Positions 9,640 through 60,653 of a DNA stretch of 64,000 bases are shown in pieces; the stretch's first letter is position 1, and each line of letters starts with the position of its first letter. The notes under the pieces are model-generated. The model made no database searches and had not been told where the DNA came from. It was given only the letters and a program-made list of their open reading frames with translations. This DNA is from Perkinsela sp. CCAP 1560/9 (lineage: Eukaryota; Protista; Euglenozoa: Kinetoplastea). The stretch spans positions 124,001 to 188,000 of the forward strand of contig CBFFSA010000018.1 of the NCBI GenBank assembly GCA_965644495.1, given 5' to 3'. A program made the translations under genes and the position numbers.

Positions 9640-9898
9640 CTTAAAGCGACTAATTTTAAAAGTCAGAATTTAGGAGTCAACGTTAATCAAAAAATATTAT
9701 CGAACGTGACCTGAATATTACGTACCTGAAGATTATCTGTTCAGTCCTACAGAAGGCACATTCATCAGCGTGAAATGAATCTGTACGTCTGAATTCGTTA
9801 TAGTTTGTTCTGCGTTTTGAAACGTTCCTTTCAGCAATCTTTTCAGATCTCGCAATCCAATTCAAATTTACGATCAATCGTATTCGTTGATAAAATTA

Positions 9899-10221
9899 CT
9901 CCCCCTCTCATTAATAATTATAATTTTAATCTATAAATCTTTTTAGTTTATAATTATAGTTATAGTCTATAATTATTAATGAGATTCGATAAGTGATTTT
10001 TTTTTATGGACTTCAATTTCTTGATTTTCGAGACACTTCGTTCAACTTGGAAACAATTTTTAGTGCAAAGTATGTGGTACAGATGTCTTTCTAGATAAAA
10101 AATGAAGAATTTGACGTTTATAATTGTAAAAGTGAGACTCAGAATTATTATCTCATTAAATTTCTATAAACAATCCCTTTAATGATGTTTGGAGGTTTAT
10201 AATTATTAATGAGAGGGGGAG
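9899..10221. mobile_element. 323-bp MITE with TA TSD
   Basis: TA|CTCCCCCTCTCATTAATAATTATAA ... TTATAATTATTAATGAGAGGGGGAG|TA; a second, interrupted copy lies at 56090-57801. Confidence 0.9.
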
Positions 10222-12708: not shown

Positions 12709-12987
12709 TCGGAAGCGTATGCCTACCCAATTAAAGTTTACATATTTTTTTCTTAATATTCGTTTTAACCTGTAGTCATTGCGGTGGTTGTATAACTACC
12801 GCTCTACCCTCGATTTTTGAAAAAAAAGTGAAAAAAAACAGTGAAAATATAAAGAGGAACACATTAATATAATAGAAGAAAAAAATATAAAAGGGGGCTT
12901 CGGTGGTCCAAAATTGAAAAAGAAAATTGAAAAAAATGGGGGGTCCATGGGGGGCGTCCAGGGGGGGGTCATGGTCGAGCAAATTTT

Positions 12988-15900
12988 CAGAGGTCCCTAA
13001 AACTATTTATAGATAGTTTATAGTGTTTCAAGAAAACTTATAGTACTATAAACCTCGTTTATAGTACTATAAACACTATACATGTATAGTACTATAAAAA
13101 CTATATGGTGTTTATCAGTGTTTCATGTCCAGAAAGGCGCGCGGTAGACAGATCGGTCGATGGGCCTGGAGGAATTTCGCGGGGCAGGAGAGAGCCGATG
13201 GAGGTGTAGAGGCTTAGAGGGGTCACGTGATGTTAGGTGGAGCAAGTGGTATGGATACGCTGACGCGTAGAAAAAAGTGAAAAGAGTAGTAGTTTTTGTC
13301 AGAAATGGAAAAAGACGGGATCCTATAGCTCACAACAAGTTCTTCCCATAATGCTCTTTCCTTGTAGCGTGCAAAACGCATTACAGTTATCCTTCAACGA
13401 GTTCCCGTTACATCACTCGTTGGATCCTAGACGTGGCGGATTCAACGGCAAGATAAAACACAAAAACACACCGCAGAGCCTGCAAGATTCAATATCTGCA
13501 AAATTCATAATATTTTAAAGAAATTTGAAGAATCACTTACCCGCTATTTCACATTTACACATTATACTTCGGCAGGAAAGGCGACCTAAGAAGACAAGGC
13601 GTCTGGGCTGGAACACATCTGAAATTAAAGTACGTCGACTTCCCCATCGACTTCAACGAAGTGTGAAAAAACGATTTGAGCTTGACCACGACGCTTGTTG
13701 GGCATAATGATGAGAAAAATAGTGAGAAATCTTTCAAGAAAACGGGAGTGACAAAAAGAAATTGCGTCGAGTCGGCATTTCAAGCAATAATTTCAGAAAA
13801 AATTTACTAAGAAAAATATTAAAAAAATATAGTTTTTATATATAGTGTTTTAAAGTTTATAGTACTATAATAGTACTATAAAATAATTTTTGTGGCACTT
13901 CCGCCGGCAGAAGAGGTTACAGTTCAAGTGTATTGATTTATGTATTGAGTTCGGTGGGGTGTAGCAAAAATCCATTATTTCATAGATGGAAGGTCATGAA
14001 AGTGAAGGATGAAGATAGGTGGAAGGTCAGGAAAATGTGGTTCACCGACGGGAATGGGTGAAAGCATAAAAGCGCGAGAGGAGTGTTCTGGGGGGAAAGG
14101 TGGAGAAGAAATCTCAACTGGTATGCTCTTTAGCCGAGAAGTGCAACATAAAGTTGGAATTGCAACAGAAAGGTGAACGACAACGACGTGCTACTAATAA
14201 TTTTTGAAGACATTCATGATTTTTGCGATTGCACTTAAAGGAAGGACATGTTATATTAAGTTTTTTAGTAAGTGCCAACTTTACTGAGTAGTGACTAACT
14301 TTACGTTTTTTATGCATAAAACTGAAAATGGGGTATACGTCAAAGAGAGGAAATTCAACCCTTTGACTTAACGTCAAAAACCGAAAAAGAGGGAAAACTC
14401 AGGGGGGGGGGGAGATCAGTCAGGGAGGAGGTGTAGCGTTGATGAAGGTGCAGAGTCGTGCGTATTTTTTAACCTATGAAGACAAAATTAGGAACCTAAT
14501 CTTTAATTTATCCTTTACGTATTCCTTTAACTACTGTTTTTACGAAATGTTTCTTAAAAAGCGAATTCTCCTTTGCCTCAACGGATTACAGAGGAACATT
14601 TTCCGCATTCTCAAAGCCGTCTACTTCTATTCGCGAATCTCTATTCGGACATTTACGTCCTCTCTTTTTTCTAGCATCCTCTTTTGCGCGAAGCTCGCCC
14701 ATTATCTCATCATGCGACTTCACGTCCTCCGCGCATTCCTTGTAGCAAAGTCTGTTCTGATACGCAACCAGTAACTGATTAAAATCTCGAGGAAATCTAT
14801 ACTGGTCCTCATTTTCTTTGACCACGGAGCTGAATCTTGATAAAACTTTCGGCCAAGGTATGTGCCTCGAAGATTTGTCGCGCACTTCATCGATGACACA
14901 TTGCAGGAGCAAGCGCACTTCAAGGGGATTGAATTTCACGATCACGTTTCTTTGGCGAGGATCAATTCTTGGAGCATGTAAATGTGTTGCCAGGTGACAT
15001 GCGTTGCTATTTCCTGTCGCGGTAAAATGTTGTACAGGTAAGTCATCAACCATTATGATCTCCTCGTGCGCCCCCAAACCTACATCAAAATCTGTATCAA
15101 AAGTTTTAAATATTCCTGCACCAGGGATATCAAGTACGCAAACACCGCATATTCTGTGCCTCTGCGGAGTTGGTGATACGGAATCGAAAGGAACCACTAG
15201 ATATGGTACGTGTGAAAGCTCGTGCAAAACGAGTACAGTGCTTGAAATGACATTGGCAAGAGAGCGAACTAGGGGAAGAAATAATTGCCCGTGTGAAACC
15301 TTGGTTATAACTTCCTCGACGTCGTTCTCGGGCTTGCTCAAGTGTTCAAGAACTCGTTCGAACGTCGTATCTTTGTCCACCCGCGATGTATCGCACCGCA
15401 GAATACAGGGATCTCCCGCACACAAGTATTCAAGTGTGCTCATCATTGACGCTGCAGTGCACTCTCCACCTAGGAAACGCACCTTTTCCTCGTGCTTAGT
15501 TGGTGTAGCCGAAAGTGCGAAGTTAAATTCCACATCGTCTTTGCCAAGAAATACGGGCTCGCAACCAAACTTATTTTGCGCCCAGCTGCGAACATTACTC
15601 AGCTGATTGTCAGACAAGGAATGTGGGATAAGTGCATATCCATCCCCAGATTGAACAGGGTGAACATATTGTGTGAAGAACAGTTCATGAGTCGTTAGTT
15701 GTTTCGCCACAGGGAGAAGTGCAAAAGGACTATTACATAATCTTGCATCGTCCGCCCCCAGGAAGAGAGAAGAGAAGGTTTCTTTCAAGGTTCGAAACAA
15801 CAGAGCGTCGAAACACATCATATCCGGCGCTGATTTGAATCTCACAGCACATTTCACATTACTTCGATAAATAAAGCTCCTTGTCAGCGCGTCTACAGTT

Positions 15901-17981
15901 TCTGCTGAGCTACGCGCGCGAAGCTTCACTTTAGCTTTCAAACGAGAATGAAAACTTTCACAAATGTTGGTTCCTCGGCTGGAACGATACACCATATTCT
16001 TATCCACGCGCGTCAAATTCACATCTGTAGGGCCACTGAGGCAGTCCCGCTCGATGTGGGCTATTGCGTACGGCCAGAGAGAAGCTAACTTGGGGTTCCA
16101 TGTAAAGATGTCCGAATATTTTTCCTTCAGGAGTTCCATTTTAGAAAGCAATTTTGCCGGACGTGGAATAACTTTCTCATGCGCATCAAGATGTTCCTTT
16201 TTTGACAAAGCGATAGTAAGAGGCTCTACTACAGATCGGCAAAGCTCGGTGTAAAACATTTTCTGCCGATTTGATGCTGAAGTGCGTGGGATAACAGCTG
16301 CGAAACGGTGCAGCCAATGCCATAAATCGCATTTAATATGTGCAGATGGAAAGTGGCGTTGTATTTTAGAACGTACTGTGCAACAGTTGTCAGCATATAT
16401 AACCATTGCTTTGCTTCCTGGACGTGATGCTATGTTTGAAAGAACATTGTGCAAAGTGTCAAAACTTTCATTTCGAGTGTATACGGCAGCCAAAATCTCA
16501 CCAATTTCATTGTGAACAACAAAGTGAGAACGAAACGGTGCTTCCCCACGCAGTCGAATGCACTTTGCGGTCTCGAAAGTATGATCCATTGCAAGCACTG
16601 TACCAGTCAGCTCGGACATATAGTTGTCACACTCCACCTGGCGCTGCTGGAGTAATGAAATCAAAACATCCTGAAAATGATCCACTGATGGAGTCATCCA
16701 TTCTTGTGAAATTCGATTTGAAATCGCTTCCACGCAATTAGGATCCCAGCGAAATCCAAATTTTTCCGTGTGCTTTAATTCAAAAATGTGTCTTTCATCG
16801 CGCTTATTACTCAGATACTGCAACGTCCGCTGATGGTAATCGACGGCATACACTTCTTGCAGAATACCTTGAAATTCACTCATATTAGAACCACTAGTTC
16901 CTATTGCCATAATGGCCGTTGAAAGTCGTCTAGTCATCCCCAATTTCTCAGTTTTAATAATAGGAAAGGAATTTCGTGCCTTGTGGGATAGGCTGGAAAT
17001 TAAGCTCTTTTCATCACTTGATATTACCTTACGACACTCAGTGCTACGACATTGATACACTTCACAAAAATAGTACATTGGTGTCGAAAGATCAAAAATC
17101 CGACGCACAGGAGAAAGCTTCATGAAAGTCAATCGCTCTTTGCAATGAAGACAGTGTAGGTTTTCTTTTTCGCCTTGGCGCATGGGCGCCCATATGATCC
17201 ATGGCAAGGTAAAAAACGTTTCCAATGAACTCCTAGGCTCCGGAGAAAAGAACCAAAGGGAAGTACATGTAGTTTTTGTTTTTAATTCTTCGTACGCCCT
17301 TCGAATGCCGTGACTTGATGTGAAGACATTCCTGTTTCGAGCAAATGCGTCCAATATTTTGTCACTTCTGTTCGTTCGTGTGTGGTTTCTTCTGGGCGAG
17401 AAGCGAACCGACAAAGCTCCGAATTTTCGGCTACTACACGCGAAAGGGTGGTTGAAAGTTCGTTGTTCCTTTTTTCCATTTCCTCAATTTGTGTTTCTAG
17501 CTTTTTGATGCTTCCCGTAAGTTGCTTCTTTTCCTTGGCCATTGTTTGGATGACGTTCAGTAGGTCCGTTTCACAAGACATGACTTAAATAATCAGAAAT
17601 CTAGAAATGATTTTTAGAGTACCAGGAAGGTTCAATAGTTTTGCTTGTAAAGTGATCATCTTGAACAGTCAGGGTACAATAGCTGAGGCTTTAAACTCTC
17701 AAACATGTACTAGAAATCGCTTCTGGGAAAACGATTTTGACGAAATCAAAAAAAATTATTGGACTACAAAAAAATTAGGTATGAAGTTCAGACTCAATAG
17801 TACACAAGTTTCATAGGAACTATTAAGTTCAGACTCAATAATAGAAACACACTTCAGTCACTATTGAGTTTTAGCAATCCAGATACGTGCAACTCAATAG
17901 AGAACTCACTAGTGACTCTTCAACCCAATAGTTGCTGTCACTATGGCGGAACTAACATTTTTGTAGTTTTACGGACCTCTG
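12988..17981 (-). mobile_element. 5-kb DNA transposon with 18-bp TIRs and an 8-bp TSD; superfamily unassigned
   Basis: CAGAGGTCCCTAAAACTA / TAGTTTTACGGACCTCTG (17/18 match); flanks CAAATTTT / CAATTTTT (7/8). The empty site is visible in other family A copies. Subterminal TATAGTACTATA repeats. Confidence 0.9.
14586..17581 (-). CDS. Large DDE transposase with DxxH motif, Cys-rich N-terminal domain and Myb/SANT-like C-terminus; the N-terminal coiled-coil ORF (17282-17581) is in a different frame
   Basis: AMDHTF..VVHNEIGEI..IYADNCC..KCDLWHWLHRF..SRGTNICESFHSRL; CLHC..YQCRSTEC; KFNPLEVRLLL..IPWPKV..RDFNQL. The 942-aa frame has only a TTG start and overlaps the ATG-initiated 99-aa ORF. Confidence 0.8.
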
Positions 17982-18951
17982 CAATTTTTTTTGAAAAAAA
18001 TATTTTTCGAAAAAAACTCTCGGAAGGGGTAGCCGGGGTCTTGGCGCGCATTTTCCACCCCCCTACCTGGGGGTGACCCCCCCGCGTATCCGCAGGACGG
18101 GTTCGCCAGGTTCGGATTTTTTCGGATTCTTTTTTTGAAAAAAAATTCAACTTGGCAAAAAAAATATTTTTCCAAAATCGTTTCCCCTATTGTATTGTGA
18201 GAGTTTGGGACCTATACTAGCTTTCTACGCAGTTGTTTTCGCAAGGTATCCCTTCTTCGAGACTTGGTGCGCCCCTCAAAATGACTCATTTTTGACTAAA
18301 AAAGGTGAAAAAGTATTTTTCGGCCCCAAAGGGCCTTTTTTGTGTCTAAAGAATGGTGTGATTGGAGTCGTATTCCCCACGCAATACGTTCGGCAGGCTT
18401 TCATTCATGCCTACGAGTGATTTCCCACGCGCAAATGTCGGATTTAGTGCTCTGAGAGCAAAAATACCCAAAATTGACCCCATTTTTTCCCGAAAATCGG
18501 CTATTTTTGGCTACAACCTTTCCGTTTTCTTCAGCTTTCCAGACCAAATTTTATTTTTTAGGCTCTTCGTTAAACGCGGTGGTAGTTTTCAACGCGAAGC
18601 GCGCAGCATGAGTGACTTCTAAGTTGAAAACAACCACTGCGTTTAACGAAGAGCCTAGAAAAGATTATGTAATATTACAATAGGCAGAAAATTGTGTTCC
18701 TTTACACAAGTAGGCGTTCGAAAACGTAAAACCTTATAAAATTACCGTCGATCCCCCCAATTGTAATAGACCTCCCAGTAACAAGGATTTGACCTTTTTT
18801 GGGATGCCACCAGTAACATCGGGCAGTAAAAAGGAAAAATCGGGCGTCTCCTGCTCAAGCCCTTATCAAGAAGGACAATTAATTAGGGGGGAGGGGGCTA
18901 TGACAATTAAGTGGGGGTGCAGTGTTTTGTGCTCGTCGGAAAAATAGAAAA

Positions 18952-25488: not shown

Positions 25489-26109
25489 TAAAAAATTGCC
25501 AAGAAGTCTTACTTTTTCCTCTTCTTTTCTCATCACTAATTGAATGTTCTACTTTACTCATGGCTCAAGGCTTTTAGCACACTCTACACGTTGGTATACA
25601 AGCTTGTGGTCCAATAGCCATTGAATAATGTCCGTTTCGCTTATCGCTGCCAAGACTGTGTATGACCAGTTGTCGGTACAAGAAAAATCAGTGCAATGCC
25701 GGCAATTTATGTCCAAAGTAGCCAAAAAGGTGGAAAAGTATCAGATAAACTGATGTATTTGCTTCAAAATGACTCTTTAGAATAATTATGACTCTTTTTC
25801 GAAAAAATATATCTTTTGGCGCAAAACCGGTTCCCTTTCACCTCAAGTTTTTTTAGAATATTTTACAAACTTTAAAAATGCGGGAAACGCATTATCACAT
25901 GATAAGTAACTTTGCGAGAGCTCTCGAATGCGGTTCTACTTTCCAAAAATTTAACGAATTTTTCATTTTTTAGACCCTCCCCATATTTTCGTTCACCCCC
26001 CTGTATAAAAAAGTTATTGCGGGGGTTGTATAACTACCGCTCTACACTCGATTATTGAAAAAACAGTGAACAAAAACAGTGAAAATATAAAGAGAAACAC
26101 AGTAATATA

Positions 26110-26370
26110 CTGTGATCTCCCCCTTTATACTTCGCTGGTCAGACCCCCCCTTTATACTTCGTTTTTTGTGTGCCCCCCCGAAGGGGGGAGGATTTTTTTA
26201 AAATTTTCGTATTTTTTCAAAATTTTTAGAAAAAAACAAGAACGTTCAAATTCTTCCCTTCTAGAAATGGAAGGTGATATAAAAAGAAAGACAGCGGGGA
26301 AAAAATTTACCACCGCCCTCTATACTTCGTTACTGCTCAAAATGGGCGAAGTATAAAGGAGGTGTCACAG
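26110..26370. mobile_element. MITE (CTGTG termini)
   Basis: TA|CTGTGATCTCCCCCTTTATACTTCG ... CGAAGTATAAAGGAGGTGTCACAG|TA. Confidence 0.85.
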
Positions 26371-26375
26371 TAATA

Positions 26376-26678
26376 AACCATGTTCCAGGATAGTATACCT
26401 AGTAGGTATACTAAGTGGGTACGGTAAACTAAGTGGGTACGGTATACTAAATTTTGTCTAAAAAGCAAAAAAAAAATTTTGCGTCGCTTCGCGGCGCGTT
26501 CCTTATCTGTAATTGCTAGAACAATGGTGTTTTGACCTTAAAATGCGATTTCTTACCGTGTGATTGTTAGAAAAGTTGCTCTGTCGCTTCTAAAAAAGGG
26601 ACTTCTCCCGCTCCTTTTGTTGGGAGGGGGGGGTAGGTGTACTAAGTGGGCATGGGTATGCTATCCTGGAACATGGTT
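26376..26678. mobile_element. MITE (AACC termini)
   Basis: TA|AACCATGTTCCAGGATAG ... CTATCCTGGAACATGGTT|TA. Confidence 0.88.
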
Positions 26679-28523
26679 TAGAAGAAAAAAATATAAAAGG
26701 GGGCTCCGGTGGTCCAAAATTGAAAAACAAAATTGAAAAAAATGGGGGGACCATGGGGGGTTCCATGGAGGGGTCCAGGAGGGGGGCATGGTCGAGCAAA
26801 TTTTTTTGAAAAAAATATTTTCCGAAAAAAACTCTCAGAAGGGGTAGCCGGGGTCTTGGCGCGTATTTTCCACCCCACCGTATTTTCCACCCTACCTGGG
26901 GGTGACCCCCCCTCGTATGCGCAGGACGGGTCCGCCAAGTTCGGATTTTTTCGGAATTTGTTTTTGAAAAAAAATTCAACTTGGCGAAAAAAATGGCAAA
27001 AAAAATATTTTTTCAAAATCCTTTGCCCTATTGTATTTTGATAGTTTGGGACGTATACTAGGTTTCCGCACCGTTGTTTTCGCAAGATATCCCTTCTTGG
27101 AGCCGTGGTAGGCCTCCCAAAATGACCCATTTTTGACTAAAAAAGGGTGAAAAAGTATTTTTCGGACCCCAAGGGGCCTTTTTGTGTCGAAAGAACGGTG
27201 TGGTTGGAGTCGCATTCTCTACCCAATACTTTGGGTAGGCGTTGCTTCATCCCTACGCGTCATTTCCCACACGCAAATATCAAATTTGGGACCTAAACTA
27301 CCTTTCTACGACGTTGTTTTCGCAAAGTATTCATTCTTCGAGCCGTGGCATGCTCCCCAAAATGACCAATTTTTGACTAAAAAACGTGAAAAAGTATTTT
27401 TCGGACCCAAAGGGCCCTTTTTGTGTCGAAAGAATGGTGTGGTTGAAGTCGTATTCTCTACCCAATACGTTCGGCAGGCTTTCATTCATGCCTACGAGTG
27501 ATTTCCCACGCGCAAATGTCGGATTTCGTGCTCTGAGAGCAAAAATACCCAAAAATGACCCCATTTTTTTCCCGAAAATCGGCTATTTTTGGCTATAATC
27601 TTTCCGTTTTCTTCAGCTTTCCAGACCAAATTTTATTTTTTAGGCTCTTCGTTAAACGCGGTGGTAGTTTTCAACGCGAAGCGCGCAGCATGAGTGACTT
27701 CTAAGTTGAAAACAACCACCGCGTTTAACGAAGAGCCTAAAAAAGAAAATACGGGGAATTCACTGCATACCGTCACCCCCCCCTCACTTGTCCTCCTAGG
27801 TGACATATCCTCTTTTTACGATTGATGAGAGGATATGTCACCTAGTACGAAGACCCCACGTAGATCATAACTCTATGGAGCATTTTTCGTTTGTTTTCCT
27901 TACTATTTATCGCGTTTTTTCACTTCTATGATTTTTACTGGTGATATTTTTAACCTCTACTGGTAATTTTTGCTGGTAAACACTTTTTTATTCAAACAAC
28001 TTACCATACCTGTGACCTCGTATATACCATACCGGGCGGGGGGGTATGCCAAACCGGACCCCCGTTTAACTCTTTCTTTAGTATAGCAGGCCGAGAGTAA
28101 CTAATAGAAAAAATATTCACACTCGAAGTCGGTACTAGGTGACTTGTCCTCCTAGGTGACATATCCGCTTTTGGCCGTTTTGTTCCACTTTTGCAAGGAT
28201 ATGTGAGGGGCCGGGAGGGTGACGGTACATGTAGTAATACTACAATACTACAATACTACATTATGGAGCGTGACCATTGTTCAGTTGCTGCAGGACTCCG
28301 CATGTGGCTAGCAGTTCAAAGTCAGGCTAAGCCATCCCACCGACTCATTTTATATGACCGCTTGATTCGTGCTTTGCGGGTAGAGCACGTGATTATAGGA
28401 ATACTATCTCCGCTGATAGAGTGGTTGTCAATGCACATTCGAAATATCCGAAACCTACGGGAGATTTGTCTCCCCCTTTTGTGCTAATTGTCAGGCGACG
28501 TAAGCGGCAACTCCTAATACAAA

Positions 28524-41556: not shown

Positions 41557-42616
41557 AGGTTCTATTTACACAATGGGGAGTATGCCGCACCTTGGATATC
41601 GGGGCAGGAAGCTTCCGATAGGGGGTTAACTAATACCTATTGTAAATGAACCTATCAAAATAAGCTTGTAATGTCTCGGGATCTTCGTCTATTCACTCCC
41701 CGATCGAACCTGTGATCATTTTCCACATTTACAGGAGTCTGTGCGCCAAAGATTGATTTTCATCCGTCCATTTTAACAAAACCCAGCAGCGTTTAGGCAT
41801 AAATGAATGAATCACGCAGAAAAAATATAAATAGAATTGCGTAGTTTGTGTAATAAGCTTTAGATGCGATTTCTCATAGGTACATTACTTTGTAATAGGT
41901 ACATGTACTTTGTCTCTGATATTAAACGGGGGTCTGGCTTAACATACCCCCCGGTATGTTCCCCAAAAAAGATGCGAAGAATTCTTCTTTTATGAGTAGC
42001 AACAAAAGAGTCGTAGGCAGGTTGGCAAAATGCCTTCGGGTTAAAACTAAACGAGGGCACGGGTTAACATGCCTATAGCACCATAACATGCCCCCCGGCA
42101 CGTTATAGTGAAATAGGGTCATACCATAGGGTCATAACATGCTCCTCCTTCTGATTTTCTCGGCGAAGCCGAGCTTTTTTTGGTACCCTGTATTTCACTC
42201 TTGTTTCTTTAATATTTATTTCTGTTAAGCCTTTCTTCAGGATAATACTGTGTTACTTTTTCAATGTCGAATCAGGGCCATACTCGTGAAGAATCCTCTG
42301 AAGAAGAGTTCTCTGAAGACGAGGAGGGGGTCGAGGAAGAGGAAGACGAGCACGAAGAAGAGGATGATGATGAGGAAGACGAAGCTGCTGATGAAGATGT
42401 TGAGCTACTGATAGTAGACTCTCTTCTCTGACCTTTTTCATGAGGAAAATACTGAACCGGGGGATGACACCTCCCAACTCACTCCCGAGCTCGACAATGA
42501 TCAGAGGAAAGAAGATCTTCTTGTGGAGTTCAAAAAGAAAAAAAACCGCTCCACCCTCGATTATTGAAAAAAAAGTGAACAAAAACAGTGAAAATATAAA
42601 GAGGAACACAGTAATA

Positions 42617-44161: not shown

Positions 44162-45107
44162 ATTGCGGTGGTTGTAAAACTACCGCTCTACACTCGATTA
44201 TTGAAAAAAAGGTGAACAAAAACAGTGAAAATATAAAGGGGAACAAAGTAATATAATAGAAGAAAAAAATATAAAAGGGGGCTCCGGTGGACCAAAACTG
44301 AAAAATAAATTTGAAAAAAAAGGGGGGTCCATGGGGGGGGGTCCAGGGGGGGGGTCCAGGGGGGTTCCATGGGGGGGGGTCCAGAGGGGGGGTCCAGGGG
44401 GGGGTCCAGGGGGGGGGTCATGGTCGAGCAAATTTTTTCAAAAAAATTAGTTTTCGAAAAAAAAACGCAGAAAGGGTAGCCGGGGTCTTGGCGCGCATTT
44501 TCCACCCCCCTACCCGGGGGTGACCCCCCCGCGTATCCGCAGGACGGGTCCGCCAAGTTCGGATTTTTTCGGAAAAAAATTTTTGAAAAAAAATTCAACT
44601 TGGCAAAAAAAATGGCAAGAAAAATATTTTTCCAAAATCGTTTCCCCTATTGTATTTTGATAGTTTGGGACCTACACTAGCTTTCTCCGCAGTTGCTTTC
44701 GCAAGGTATCCCTTCTTCTAACCGTGGTGCGCCCCTCAAAATGACCCATTTTTGACTAAAAAAGGTGAAAAAGTATTTTTCGGACCTAAAGGGGCATTTT
44801 TGTGTCGAAAGATTGGTATGGTTGGAGTCGCATTCTCTACCCAATACGTTCGGTAGGCTTTCATTCATGCCTACGAGTGATTTCCCATGCGCAAATGTCG
44901 GATTTAGTGCTCTGACAGCAAAAATACGCGAAAATCACCCCATTTTTACCCGAAATTCGGCTATTTTTGGCTACAATCTTTCCGTTTTCCAGGCTAAATT
45001 TTCTTTTTTAGGCTCTTCGTTAAACGCCGCGGTAGTTTTCAACGCGAAGCGCGCAGCATGAGTGACTTCTAAGTTGAAAACAACCACCGCGTTTAACGAA
45101 GAGCCTA
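44162..45107 (+). mobile_element. Family A, uninterrupted 946-bp reference copy with an expanded G-run minisatellite
   Basis: ATTGCGGTGGTTGTAAAACTACCGC ... G-run-TCCA repeats at 44322-44420 ... 99-bp hairpin at 45009-45107. Confidence 0.9.
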
Positions 45108-45854
45108 ATTTATTATTCAAAAAATCAAACCATTAATATTATTAATAATTCAATATGCATTTACACGAGGGGCTGCGAGTGACACATGAGGAGCCCCTCG
45201 CATGTAGACATATGGTCGGCGTCATTTGCAGCAGTATGATGGCAGCACCAGGGAAGACCGCCAGGAGATCCAGAAAGCTCATTTTCGTTGCTACACATCA
45301 TACAAATACAGAGTTTGGCATTTCCCGGCTCTCGATATCAGCACTCCACAAGGAGTTGTTGTTGGTACAGCCCATTTACCTGCGTCAGGCGTAGGCTCCT
45401 ACTTCCCGCGTAGGTTGAGGTGCATATAATGATGCTCGAAGCATCAGCATCGACTCCATAAGGAGATCTCCATCAATGCTCCTTTTCGGCATGAAAATAC
45501 TGTTTGGTACAAAATTAAGGGGGAGAAATTTGAGTGTAAAAGCCCAATAATAATTTATTAATAAACTATTAATAATTTATTAATAATCTATTAATAATAA
45601 TTATTGAGGGAGATACGGAGTATCTAACTCGCTTACTAAGGTTAATTCCAAAACTTGAAAATGCCCCTCAAAAAAGCGAGAGATCGAGTTTTTTCAAAAT
45701 TTTAAAACGTAGCAGTAGCTCATTAGATGAACTCTTTAATACTCGAAAAATCATCTACAACGACCTCATTTCCCAAATTGTAGAACACTTTTGGTAAAAA
45801 AAAGTGCGTCTGCAAAGGTCTGCGATACGACAAACTGGTTGACTAAGGAGAGTC

Positions 45855-48036: not shown

Positions 48037-48442
48037 TATTACCGAACTGAATTATTAATAATCCTGCAGCTATGGATGCGGCAAGGGATGCGATGAGGAG
48101 TGTGAATGCGATCAAGTGTTGTGGACAAGAGACTGGTCTAATTGACTTTAGCCGGGCCATGTCTAATTAAAAGGATTAAAAAATGATGCAATCAAATTAT
48201 ATTTTGATAATTTCATTAGAAAATTATGTTCCATCACACAAGCAAGCGTTCGTAAAAGGAAGACTTCATAAAATTATGTTCTGTGCACTTGGGTTAACGA
48301 AGCGACTCAAAATGAAATTATTTCGAAGATAATAATTTCATATTTTGGGAAGAATATGACCACAAGAAATGAATGAAAAAAAATAAAAGAAAAATAATTG
48401 CCGCTTCGCAGGACGGACTGTTCAAAAGCAACGCTAATTTCT

Positions 48443-49160
48443 TAGGCTCTTCGTTAAACGCGGTGGTTGTTTTCAGCTTAGAAGTCACTCATGCTGCGCG
48501 ATTCGCGTTGAAAACTACCACCGCGTTTAACGAAGAGCCTAAGAAAGAAAAATCGCGAAAAGATCATGCATAATCTATTTTTCGGGGGGAAAAACCTCGA
48601 TTTTTCGGCAAAAAATGCGAATTTTTAACCCGAATTTGGGCCGTTTTGGATGCCTTGCCAGTAGGGCTAAGAGGCGAATCGGTCGAAAAAAACGTCGTGG
48701 AATGGTAGCTGGGGCCTCAAGCTCTTAAAATACGTTTTAGGAGTCGATTTTGGAAAAATAATATTTTACCTTTTTTTGGGTCAAAAAAAACATTTTTGGT
48801 CACCCCAAAAAATTCGGAAATTTTGGTCTTATCGGACCCGTCCTGCGCGTACCAGGGGGGGGGGGTACCCCTAGGTGGGGTGGAAAATTATCGCCGCGGC
48901 CTACTCTACCACTTCCCGGAGCTCGATTTTGAAAATCAGAAAATTCTAAAAAAAAATTCGCGACGTATGCTCCCCCTGGACCCCCCATTTTTTTCAATCT
49001 TGTTTTTCAGTTTTGGACCACAGGAGCCCCCTTTTACATTTTTTTCTTCTATTATAATTTTTCTTCTATTTATTACTGTTTTTCTCTTTATATTTTCACT
49101 GTTTTTGTTCACTTTTTTTTTCAACAATCGGTAGAGCGGTAATTATACAACCACCGCAAT
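48443..49160 (-). mobile_element. Family A diverged subfamily (same ends, different body)
   Basis: 99-bp hairpin at 48443-48541 and the end GCGGTAATTATACAACCACCGCAAT at 49160. Related partial copies lie at 49200-49443, ~54670-54945 and ~61740-61820. Confidence 0.85.
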
Positions 49161-49459
49161 AAGGGGGGGTACCGGGACAACGCTAGGATAGGGGGGGATA
49201 GTATTTTAAGAGTTTGGGACCTCAGCTACCATTCTACGACGTTTTTTTCGGCAGATTCGCCTCCTACCCATACTCGTAAGGCATCAAAACGGCCTAAATC
49301 CGGGATAAAAAAATATTATTCACGATCTTTTGACGATTTTACTTTTTTAGGCTCTTCGTTATACGCGGTGGTAGTTTTCAAGGCGAAGCGCGCAGCATAA
49401 GTGACTTCTAAGTTGAAAACCACCGCGTTTAACGAAGAGCCTAAAATATACCCCCATGC

Positions 49460-56089: not shown

Positions 56090-57801
56090 CTCCCCCTCTC
56101 ATTAATAAATTTCTAGGCTCTTCGTTAAACGCGGTGGTTGTTTTCAACTTAGAAGTCACTCATGCTGCGCGCTTCGCGTTGAAAACTACCTCCGCGCTCA
56201 ATGAAGAGCTTAAAAAAGAAAATTTAAAAAAGCGCTAAATAGTGAAAAAAATGTATGAACAAAAAAATTCGAATCACAAAAATAAGAACATGCGATTTTC
56301 ATCTCATTTTAGAGGATCATTTTTTAGAGGATCTTAGAGGTCACTCATGCTGCGCGCTTCGCGTTCAAAACTAGCACCGCGTTTAACGAAGAGCCTAAAA
56401 AAGAAAATTCAGCCTGGACAGCTAAAGTAAGACAAAGATTATAGCCAAAAATACCCGATTTTATGGTAAAAATGGGGTATTTTTTGGGTATTTTTGCTCT
56501 CAGAGCGCTAAATCTGATATTTGCGCGTGAGAAATCACTCGTAGGCGTGAATGAAAGCCTACTGAACGTATTGGGTATAGAATGCGACTCCAACCACACC
56601 ATTCTTGACATAAAAAGACCTCTTTAGGTCCGAAAATTACTTTTCCGCACTTTTTGGTCAAAAATGGGCCATTTTGGGAGGCGTGCCACGGCTAGAAGAT
56701 GGGGTATCTGGCGAAAACAACGGTGTAGATGGCTAGTATAGGTCCCAAACTCTCAAAATACAATAGCGAAAAAAATAATTTTTTAACCATTTTTTCCGCC
56801 AAGTTGAATTTTTTTTCAATTTTTTTTTCCCGAAAATATCCGAACTTGGCGGACCCGTCCTGCGGATACGCGGGGGGGTCACCCCCAGGTAGGGGGGTGG
56901 AAAATGCGCGCCAAGACCCCGGCTACCCCTTCTGCGGTTTTTTTTCGAAAAATATTTTTTTCTAAAAAATTTGCTCGACCATCTTTTTTTCCATTTCTGA
57001 CAAAAACTACTACTCTTTTCACTTTTTTTTACGCGTCAGCGTATCCATACCACTTGCTCCACCTAACATCACGTGACCCCTCTAAGCCTCTACACCTCCA
57101 TCGGTTCTGTCCTGCCCCGCGAAATTCCTCCAGGCCCATCGACCGATCTGTCTACCGCGCGCCTTTCTGGACATGAAACACTGATAAACACCATATAGTT
57201 TTTATAGTACTATATAGTGTTTATAGTACTATAAACGAGGTTTATAGTACTATAAATTTTCTTGAAACACTATAAACTATCTATAAATAGTTTTAGGGAC
57301 CTCTGAAAATTTGCTCGACCATGACCCCCCCACTGGACCCACCATTTTTTTCAATTTTTTCAATTTTGGACCACCGGAGACCCCTTTTATATTTTTTTTT
57401 CTATTATATTACTGTGTTCCTCTTTATATTTTCACTGTTTTTGTTCACTTTTTTTTCAATAATCGAGGGTAGGGCGGTAGTTTTACAACAACCGTAATAA
57501 TTATAGTCTATAAACCTTTTTAGTTAATAATTGTAATTATAGTTTATAATTATTAATGAGATTCGATAAGTGATTTTTTCTTATTGTGGACTTCAAATTC
57601 TTGATTTTCGAGACACTTCGTTCAACTTGGAAGCAATTTTTAGTGCAAAGTATGTGGTACAGGTGTCTTTGTAGATAAAAAATGAAGAATTTGAGGCTTG
57701 TAATTATAAAAGTGAGACTCATAATTATAATCGCATTAAATTTCTATAAACGATCCCTTTAATGATTTTTGGAGGTTTATAATTATTAATGAGAGGGGGA
57801 G
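56090..57801. mobile_element. Second copy of the 323-bp MITE, split by family A
   Basis: TA|CTCCCCCTCTCATTAATAA (56090-56108) resumes at ~57499 and ends GAGAGGGGGAG|TA. Confidence 0.85.
56114..57498 (-). mobile_element. Family A copy (reverse) with a duplicated hairpin end and a 323-bp left-end fragment of the 5-kb transposon (56983-57305)
   Basis: Hairpins at 56114-56212 and 56340-56397 (partial). The body is colinear with 44162-45107, and 56983-57305 is the reverse complement of 12988-13315. Confidence 0.87.
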
Positions 57802-58987: not shown

Positions 58988-60364
58988 AATTGTAAACCCA
59001 ATAGAGGCCACAGTTTCGCCCTCCGATCCTCTTCATTTAACCCGCCCTCCCATGCCAGTGAGTGTCAAAGTGCCCGTGCAGTCCCCAATAGTCCTCCACA
59101 CTGCAAGCAATGCTCCTTCTCCACGTACGAAGAAAAGTGGACGTCCAGCCGGCTCACAGGCTCCCCCACGTACGGTTCAAACAACAGATTTGAACGAAAT
59201 CTGAGTTTGAGTTGAGTACAATGCCGGAAAGTGTATGTATCGAAAGTAAGATAAGAAAGTCTCGAAGAAAAGTTTGCCCTTGTGTAAGATTGTAGATACA
59301 CTGCATGTATTCAAAGTTGTTATTATCAAAAGGTTTTTGATTTCAAGTACGTAATATTCTGTCAATGCTACACGTTTGTAAGGCGAAACAAACGGATTTA
59401 AAATTCTACAAAAAACGATTTTTGTAAGTATTAGAAGAAAACAATTAATGATAGTGAATTTTTTACGTAAAAAATTTACCAAATGAGTCATCTTGCAGCT
59501 TTAGCACCACCACCAATCCTGTCCATACGCCACACGTTACGAATACAACACATAAGGGGGAAAAACATAGGCCCCGTGAAGCGGCTCCGAAATTTGTTTG
59601 CGGTTCACTTTCGAATTCTGCCAATCACCACAGACGCGTTGCCCCCACTCTAAGTAGTTGCTCGTCTCCGTCAGTAAAAAAATCTAGGTTATCTTTTAGT
59701 TTACAGTGAAGTATTCAAATACGAGTGGATTATATTACGGTTATTTTTAATTACGGTTATTTTTAATTAAGATTATTTTTATCCACGAAAAAAAATACCT
59801 TTTTTCACGTCTATCACCATCGACCTCACTTTCATACGAAACATAAACCTTTATAAAATGATCACAGACGAAACCAGTGGCTTGGGCGCTTAAAAGGTAC
59901 TCAAAAAGTGTGTTCAAAACTTATTAATTTACGAGTGGATTATATTACGGTTGATTTAATTAAGATTAATTTTAGCCCAAAAATAACCTTAAAAGCGTAC
60001 TTAAATAATACCGTACTTAAATATACAATGTAACACTGTACGTGTATTGTTGGTGAAAACAAATGTCGCATCAAAATTCTTTTAATGTATAAGTGCAAGA
60101 GCGATGGGCTTGCAAAACCATTCGGCGGTGATACTTAAAAAAGGTCATTCTCTTCTACTCCCCATCCGATTAACTTTGATAATGATAAAAGATGATGATA
60201 AATCAAATCGACTTACCGTATACCCCCCAGTAAGAGAGATTTGGTCCTTTTTCGGCTGACCCCCAGCAAGAGAGATTTTTCTCGGGAGGCGTATAGGGCG
60301 TAGGGGGTGGGTGTCCGGATGTCGGGAGCCTCGGCTACCCCCCCGGCTACACCCCCCGGCTCCC

Positions 60365-60653
60365 TCCGGCTACACCCCCCGGGTAGGGGGGTGGAAAATA
60401 CGCGCCAAGACCCCGGCTACCCCGTCTGCGGGTTTTTTTCGAAAAATAATTTTTTCAAAAAAAAAATTCGTGCGGTATGCCCCCCCCCTAGACCCCCCAT
60501 TTTTTCAATTTTTTCAATTTTGGACCACCGGAGCCCCCTTTTATATTTTTTTCTTCTATTATTTTACTGTGTTCCTCTTTATATTTTCACTGTTTTTGTT
60601 CACTTTTTTTTCAATAATCGAGTGTAGAGCGGTAGTTATACAACCACCGCAAT
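60365..60653 (-). mobile_element. Family A partial copy (small-hairpin end only)
   Basis: Ends GCGGTAGTTATACAACCACCGCAAT and is fused to a TA|CCGTATACCCCCCAGTAAGAGAG element (60216-60340) that is also seen at 19230-19385. Confidence 0.8.

Follow-up and report, generated by a model that had tools for sequence, protein, structure and literature searches.

Family A, the most abundant repeat of the window (the whole 64-kb stretch of DNA analyzed here, C18:124001-188000), very probably belongs to the non-autonomous Helitron-like elements, is of the Helitron2/HLE2 type, and depends for its copying on RepHel supplied in trans by an autonomous element, 12.9 kb long, of the same genome. A preliminary description of this DNA had proposed a non-autonomous rolling-circle (HUH) element, and this is borne out by two 12.9-kb RepHel-coding elements that start and stop at the exact termini of family A. 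On the basis of published descriptions and domain content, family A is placed as a new, HLE2-like family of Helitron-like elements.

Family A copies in the window and the genome

Self-BLAST detects about 11 family A copies, full or partial, within the window, in good agreement with the approximately ten first counted. The principal features, with positions given in the window, are as follows.

44162, plus strand: host A, forming the 5' side of the A|T target
44163-45108, plus strand: reference family A copy, 946 bp, with its 3' tail shortened at CCTAA and a host T at 45109
44165-44186, plus strand: 5' hairpin, a 9-bp stem including one G-T pair, with a 4-nt loop
44165-44175, plus strand: 5' asymmetric terminal inverted repeat (TIR) GCGGTGGTTGT, part of the 5' hairpin
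44322-44419, plus strand: G-rich minisatellite, 13-nt unit x 7.6, differing in length among copies
44999-45108, plus strand: 3' palindrome, with 5' arm 44999-45043, loop 45044-45072, and 3' arm 45073-45108
45043-45051, plus strand: C-GCGAAGC-G mini-hairpin motif at the palindrome tip
45080-45090, plus strand: 3' asymmetric TIR ACAACCACCGC, within the 3' arm; in full-length copies its distance from the end is 27 nt
12779-12988, plus strand: 5' fragment, about positions 1-275
17981-18664, plus strand: 5'-truncated copy with 3' palindrome
26017-27749, plus strand: full copy with complete tail, split by an unrelated 570-bp insertion at 26110-26678
42539-42616, plus strand: short 5' fragment, positions 15-92
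48438-49159, minus strand: second-subfamily copy sharing its ends with family A, with a different body
49338-49446, plus strand: 3' palindrome without a family A body upstream
56106-57497, minus strand: deletion derivative of the autonomous element, whose positions 1-180 and 899-1779 are joined to the terminal palindrome (12747-12860)
60376-60652, minus strand: 5' fragment

These rows agree with what had been reported of copies that keep one end, seen here as 5' fragments and 5'-truncated copies, of two subfamilies with common ends and different bodies, the second of which has now been identified, and of a G-run minisatellite of variable length. The lengths of family A elements cluster at about 870 to 950 bp. 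Within the window, GCGGTGGTTGT or its complement occurs 19 times with at most one mismatch, against 0.96 expected, and CGCGAAGCG occurs 8 times against 0.39 expected, 5 of these lying in family A hairpins and 3 outside family A. The 570-bp insertion at 26110-26678 has its own CGCGAAGCG motif (26485, minus strand).

At first look, a search of the whole 21-Mb assembly gave 695 palindrome candidates, the palindrome being scored on either strand, and 659 candidate left ends; 60 loci were retrieved. From these first-look counts, we estimate several hundred copies, or roughly 2 to 3% of the genome. An Rfam scan of the window gave no match, the 3' palindrome searched against Rfam gave only a meaningless sub-threshold match to a miRNA precursor, and a metagenome scan with the 5' hairpin pattern returned no match.

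Termini and conservation of the palindrome

In the junction alignment, conservation at the left end begins at A-TTGCGG, with the TT invariant. This end had been described as ATT followed by a small hairpin; the hairpin is confirmed, and the usual leading A is to be assigned to the host, because the L050 copy and its empty sites both carry G at that position. As single-stranded DNA, the 5' hairpin has a folding energy of -8 kcal/mol (z -4.3 against shuffled controls). The reverse complement of its 22-mer (44165-44186) equals the middle of the 3' palindrome minus the tip, and both ends of family A carry one common 9-bp stem, in opposite orientations. The two 11-mers recognized earlier as subterminal inverted repeats are present as asymmetric TIRs, complementary at 11 of 11 nt; the distances first given, 3 and 17 nt, become 2 nt for the 5' TIR and 27 nt for the 3' TIR when measured from the refined ends.

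At the right end, the 99-bp cruciform of the preliminary description is retained in its 29-nt loop and in its arms (45008-45043 and 45073-45108), with the last base of the element at 45108 rather than 45107, and is extended in its full reach. Most genomic copies continue past CTAA into ...CCTAAAAAAGAAAA, and in these copies the palindrome gains 11 pairs through an A-rich tail (AAAAAAGAAAA) that pairs with a T-rich run. Because the tail complements the T-rich run that immediately precedes the 5' arm, each arm measures 45 nt. The full palindrome, as single-stranded DNA, has a folding energy of -51 kcal/mol (z -12 against shuffled controls). The 3' arm of the reference copy is shortened, complete copies having 9 further tail bases.

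The whole tail is found in only 24 of 66 unique 3' junctions. Shorter tails cluster after TAA, after TAAAA, and one base below full length, and CTAA is the exact end in 8 of the 66. The reference copy is itself 3'-truncated at CCTAA, and it follows that the CTAG/CTAA finish noted earlier represents a shortened end and not the canonical one, the full tail ending in ...GAAAA.

Covariation in the stems, put forward earlier as a check, is detectable. In an alignment of 42 distinct palindromes, 93.7% of cells are paired, and double-sided changes occur at 7 stem pairs, some of them in the tail, a count that includes some tail-edge pairs that are chance matches to the flank in truncated copies, against 2.6 +/- 1.2 in shuffles; this value was reached by 1 of 500 shuffles. 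Compensatory changes are clear in five copies (L041:737-855, L080:6386-6504, L048:496-618, L027:560-678, and window 48433-48551), in three of which they lie within the tail or next to it. At hairpin positions 36 and 84, all or nearly all of the 42 distinct hairpins keep the A/A mismatch, as had been observed on a smaller scale, and a small internal loop around the 3' TIR persists across copies in the same way. The persistence of both irregularities indicates that the arms are not simply re-copied from each other in each cycle, a point in favor of selection acting on the transposing lineage. The C-GCGAAGC-G motif, correctly located at the start of the loop in the preliminary description, is kept in a divergent hairpin with a different loop (L048:496-618). 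The stability of the GCGNAGC mini-hairpin has been described (PMC13037366).

Insertion between A and T without target duplication

The junctions point to insertion of family A between A and T, without target duplication, as the preferred assignment. Of 59 unique non-tandem junctions, 57 have A as the host base at -1. At +1, the host contributes a T in 23 of 24 junctions with a full tail and in 31 of 42 with a short tail, against a background T content of 26%; the short-tail junctions without T at this position mostly belong to tails with a point mutation.

The absence of a constant target site duplication (TSD), already noted from the window, is supported here by exact nested insertions and by paralogous empty sites. 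In L051, a host family A copy is split at reference positions 110|111, and in L060 at 39|40, in both cases at A|T and with nothing duplicated or lost. The paralogous empty site at window 9860-10010, corresponding to the copy at 56106-57497, and those for the L050 copy (window 59680-59830 and L002) agree with no TSD. A model in which ATT is duplicated as a TSD was rejected, as no more than about 60% of copies with a full tail are followed by ATT, and the host site in L051 is ATA. Position 39|40 of family A (...GATTA|TTGAAA) is repeatedly hit, and is similar to the element's own 5' junction.

Contigs from sequencing runs were also compared with the reference copy. Contig X4 spans its left junction, and in X1-X3 one contig stops matching at 44164, beyond which its sequence no longer resembles the window. 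This is where divergence would be expected for an empty A|T site, because the right flank also starts with TT, and a presence/absence difference at this locus is possible. This right flank (window 45109-45220) contains an A/T-rich stretch and a GC-rich inverted repeat (approximately 45166-45205) and may be another small element, and it makes an empty-site reading from contigs harder. Joints in the sequencing-run contigs that "go back" to the element were considered as circles and rejected, since they reflect genomic tandem and nested copies.

The autonomous partner and its RepHel protein

The preliminary description placed the HUH enzyme outside the window, and the genome agrees: Helitron_like_N has 17 matches in the assembly, and the genome-wide search for this Helitron Rep domain found none within the window coordinates on C18. 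It had also suggested looking for long elements with the same ends that encode Rep and helicase. Two such elements were found, on C8 and C4. The C8 element (C8:151113-163973) is 12,861 bp long. The two are 96 to 99.7% alike, extend exactly from TTGCGG to the palindrome tail, and have unrelated flanks; over 10 kb they are 99.7% alike, and the C4 copy carries a frameshift.

The RepHel gene of the C8 element appears from its sequence to be intact. Its open frame of 2965 aa (L079:412-9306) has Pfam matches to DUF6570 (PF20209; residues 1350-1475; 43.5 bits against a cut-off of 24.3 bits), Helitron_like_N (1601-1821; 76 bits), and PIF1 (from 2509; 88 bits). The motifs HFH at 1813, YLIKY (YxxKY) at 2031, and Walker A at 2539 bring HUH, two-tyrosine, and PIF1-family helicase motifs together in one protein, as is characteristic of the Helitron-like superfamily. 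A Pfam search of the 2965-aa ORF gave no match to Exo_endo_phos at E <= 0.01. When RepHel is compared with solved structures, only the helicase domain aligns, with PIF1 structures at E 6e-24 and a weak match to the Helraiser structure at E 2e-7; the Rep domain is too divergent for phmmer alignment to Helraiser, and the structures did not help to sub-classify Rep. The N-terminal 1350 aa (L079:412-4460) consist of tandem 89-aa Cys/His-rich, zinc-finger-like repeats, and the number of the corresponding 267-bp DNA repeats differs between the C8 and C4 copies.

Upstream of the RepHel gene, the autonomous element contains nearly two family A units, the first of which is 94% identical to the reference copy over positions 1-895. 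Family A retains only the two ends and leader sequence of the autonomous element. Both internal units are without the palindrome 3' arm, one being fused to the next at position 40 and the other continuing into the gene leader, so that only the terminal palindrome is complete. This is what would be expected if the complete palindrome is the stop signal.

Two further observations concern this locus. Inside the autonomous element, 42 nt past the RepHel stop, lies a weak full-length match to a type-P1 twister ribozyme (RF03160; L077:1851-1921, plus strand, equal to C8:161851-161921), with 24.4 bits against a gathering threshold of 67.2 and E 0.03 in 2.4 kb. The conserved blocks are retained, the substitutions C to A and G to U could be compensatory in a pseudoknot pair, and the match lies outside family A. 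A cluster of six tRNA genes is found some 2 kb downstream of the autonomous element (L080:3344-4059, equal to C8:165844-166559), which includes a selenocysteine tRNA (62.8 bits).

Tandem arrays and alternative readings

An array on C2 consists of 4 to 5 family A units, head to tail at a spacing of about 940 bp, with the junction GAAAA|TTGCGG. Genomic tandem arrays thus carry the same junction as would be expected of a circle. As the C2 units differ mutually by 1 to 8%, they do not represent newly made rolling-circle concatemers and are no substitute for circle junctions; either the array is old or copies have inserted repeatedly at the A|T junctions formed by the element's own ends. On C15 (18700-54800; L007-L016), family A palindromes recur every 3420 bp in what looks like a higher-order tandem array, and the one unit examined (L009) contains a 5'-truncated family A copy and other sequence.

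Such arrays, with their spacings of about 940 bp on C2 and 3.4 kb on C15, would be accommodated if family A were a satellite-like repeat spread by recombination or segmental duplication, with its association with a Helitron gene a matter of chance nesting. We regard this as very improbable, given that dozens of solo copies have identical, precise ends and unrelated flanks, that nested insertions are exact, that the two autonomous copies at different loci have exactly the same boundaries, and that the internal terminators are specifically disabled. Scarcely any weight can be given to the idea that an independent palindromic MITE, mobilized by a DDE transposase (for example, that of the Merlin or Tc1 elements of this genome), became fixed within an older repeat. 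Some hairpins do lack an upstream family A body, such as that at window 49338-49446, and the preliminary description had recognized that a hairpin occurring mostly alone with TA TSDs would speak for an ordinary MITE. However, the family A body lies directly upstream in 48 of 62 distinct hairpins, most of the others having the recurring body of the sister subfamily; nested insertions and paralogous empty sites reveal no TSD; the ends of the element are asymmetric; and the foot of the palindrome is the element's 3' end in RepHel-coding copies. The combination of inverted repeats at both tips and a fixed-length TSD, by which a MITE or DDE transposon would be identified, is not found in family A.

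A different question is whether the same element and enzyme should be given boundaries by the usual HLE2 rule, with insertion at T|T and an element reading TGCGG...GAAAAT. HLE2 elements generally insert at T|T (PMC11417382), family A starts with TT and is usually followed by a T beyond its 3' end, making a one-base shift possible, and the host base at +2 is T in 14 of 24 full-tail junctions. This frame nevertheless seems unlikely to us. It leaves the A two bases upstream, conserved at 97%, without explanation, and requires that all copies with shortened tails keep the terminal T while losing internal A's. The A|T assignment is preferred over AT|T because the latter leaves a 3' host base that is T in only 58% of junctions and fails in L051, where the nested insertion would lie at T|A. 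The comparisons below therefore take family A as an HLE2-like element inserted at A|T.

Comparison with known Helitron types

The terminal architecture of family A, which the preliminary description did not recognize, matches that published for Helitron2/HLE2 and related elements (PMC3627910, PMC5148889). In Helitron2, the 5' TIR is found 0 to 2 nt from the end and makes up a 5' hairpin, the 3' TIR lies 20 to 30 nt from the 3' end, and a 3' hairpin and a 5' T are present (PMC3627910). The closest likeness is with the elements of Bao and Jurka (2013; PMC3627910), exemplified by Helitron-1_CRe with Helitron-1N1_CRe. It comprises the 11-nt asymmetric TIR located 2 nt from the 5' end and within the 5' hairpin, the partner TIR 27 nt from the 3' end, the 3' hairpin, the 5' terminal T, a RepHel without endonuclease, abundant short non-autonomous derivatives, and DUF6570, which is a reported marker of HLE2 transposases (PMC11417382). 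The family A TIRs fall within the range of 8 to 18 nt given for the group, with the 5' one 0 to 2 nt from the end, and the 5' hairpin includes the 5' TIR as it does there. The differences concern mainly the 3' end and the target. Whereas the 3' TIR of Helitron2/HLE2 precedes a separate short hairpin, that of family A lies inside the 3' arm of a palindrome of approximately 120 nt, and the last base of the element is the foot of the palindrome stem. Where T|T would be the usual target, family A is inserted at A|T (in 97% of junctions on the 5' side and 96% on the 3' side with a full tail), and the 3' ends vary in length, unlike those of usual HLE2 elements.

FoHeli1 and FoHeli2 of Fusarium oxysporum (PMC5148889) likewise have hairpins at both termini, a 3' inverted repeat within the hairpin, GAA-loop mini-hairpins, an A/T-rich, homopolymer-like 3' end, and no TSD. 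They differ in having 3' repeats 38 to 51 bp from an ATTTT end, a reported target of TNAT|T (or A), short hairpins, and a fungal host.

The suggestion of a Helentron-like system holds in so far as family A is of Helitron type, and fails for Helentrons in the strict sense. Helentrons and HINE/DINE-1 elements (PMC4067079) share with family A subterminal inverted repeats, a 3' palindrome, internal micro- or minisatellites, a bias toward T-rich targets, deletion derivatives that match the partner at more than 90% identity, and terminal homopolymer runs of copy-dependent number. They differ in the C-terminal AP endonuclease of their RepHel, in a TT target, and in 3' palindromes of only 5 to 10 bp. 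As no AP endonuclease domain was found in RepHel, assignment as a Helentron was rejected.

Canonical Helitron1 elements have a 5' TC, a 3' CTRR, and a short hairpin 10 to 12 nt from the end. Family A begins with TT instead of TC, and its full-length 3' end is ...GAAAA instead of CTRR; as its ends are not TC...CTRR, this assignment was rejected as well. Family A also differs from Helitron1 in having TIRs and a 5' hairpin, and in a 3' hairpin that is far longer and reaches the terminus. Similarity to Helitron1 (Helraiser, PDB 7LCC) is found in A/T insertion without TSD, in a RepHel with HUH, two tyrosines, and PIF1 helicase, in a 3' hairpin as the presumed terminator, and in a CTAA motif near the end.

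A proposed transposition cycle

When these results are placed alongside established Helitron biology, a cycle can be outlined. Its starting points are established above: the termini and target of the element, insertion without a TSD, a same-ended partner with open catalytic motifs, and the maintenance of the stem; the chemistry, the circle, and the role of the hairpin as terminator are what we infer for the steps between. RepHel would recognize the 5' hairpin and TIR and nick the top strand between the host A and the element TT, after which its PIF1-type helicase would peel the nicked strand off in the 5'-to-3' direction. The long 3' palindrome could then fold back and mark the end of the element, and the second tyrosine would cut at the A/T-rich foot of the stem, either after ...GAAAA or, with a frayed foot, a few bases upstream. 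Joining of the ends would give GAAAA-TTGCGG, and the copy would enter an A/T-rich site between A and T, with no duplication. Heterogeneity of the 3' end is unusual for Helitrons, and fraying of the stem foot would offer an explanation for it.

Host context and implications

Several observations bear on the identity of the host. A full-length KMP-11 gene is present on contig C1, which also carries family A and Rep matches, and this linkage argues against contamination. A spliced-leader-like 19-mer occurs at 5 genome loci, against 0 for a control, a result that serves as a lead only. All 15 window ORFs of at least 250 aa are on the minus strand. Together, KMP-11, the spliced-leader-like 19-mers, and the one-strand ORFs indicate that the genome is euglenozoan and most likely kinetoplastid. 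The search of the genome for the paraflagellar rod (PF05149) gave no match, with the gene either absent or missed, and the host may be aflagellate.

The kinetoplastid-like host is the most surprising aspect of the family A finding. Class II elements were absent from 57 trypanosomatids surveyed in a 2025 study, which cited Merlin in Bodo and Perkinsela as the only known DNA transposons of the group (PMC12278014), and Helitrons have not been reported in kinetoplastids in published surveys. An open RepHel frame of 2965 aa, together with two autonomous copies 99.7% alike over 10 kb, would revise this picture. We propose, tentatively, that family A and its partner are the first documented Helitron system in a kinetoplastid-like genome, possibly still active, and represent an HLE2 lineage that takes the foot of an extruded palindrome of approximately 120 nt as the reference point for its 3' end and has the A|T target typical of HLE1.

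With the partner, the ends, and the target rule of family A defined, annotation of this genome can be improved. The long, covarying palindrome that reaches the terminus, together with variable cuts at an A/T-rich foot, makes family A a convenient natural system in which to study the recognition of Helitron stop signals. If the proposal is correct, it would provide a model, open to direct testing, for the way in which RepHel locates its stop signal, as well as a candidate DNA-transposon tool for a group thought to be free of Helitrons.
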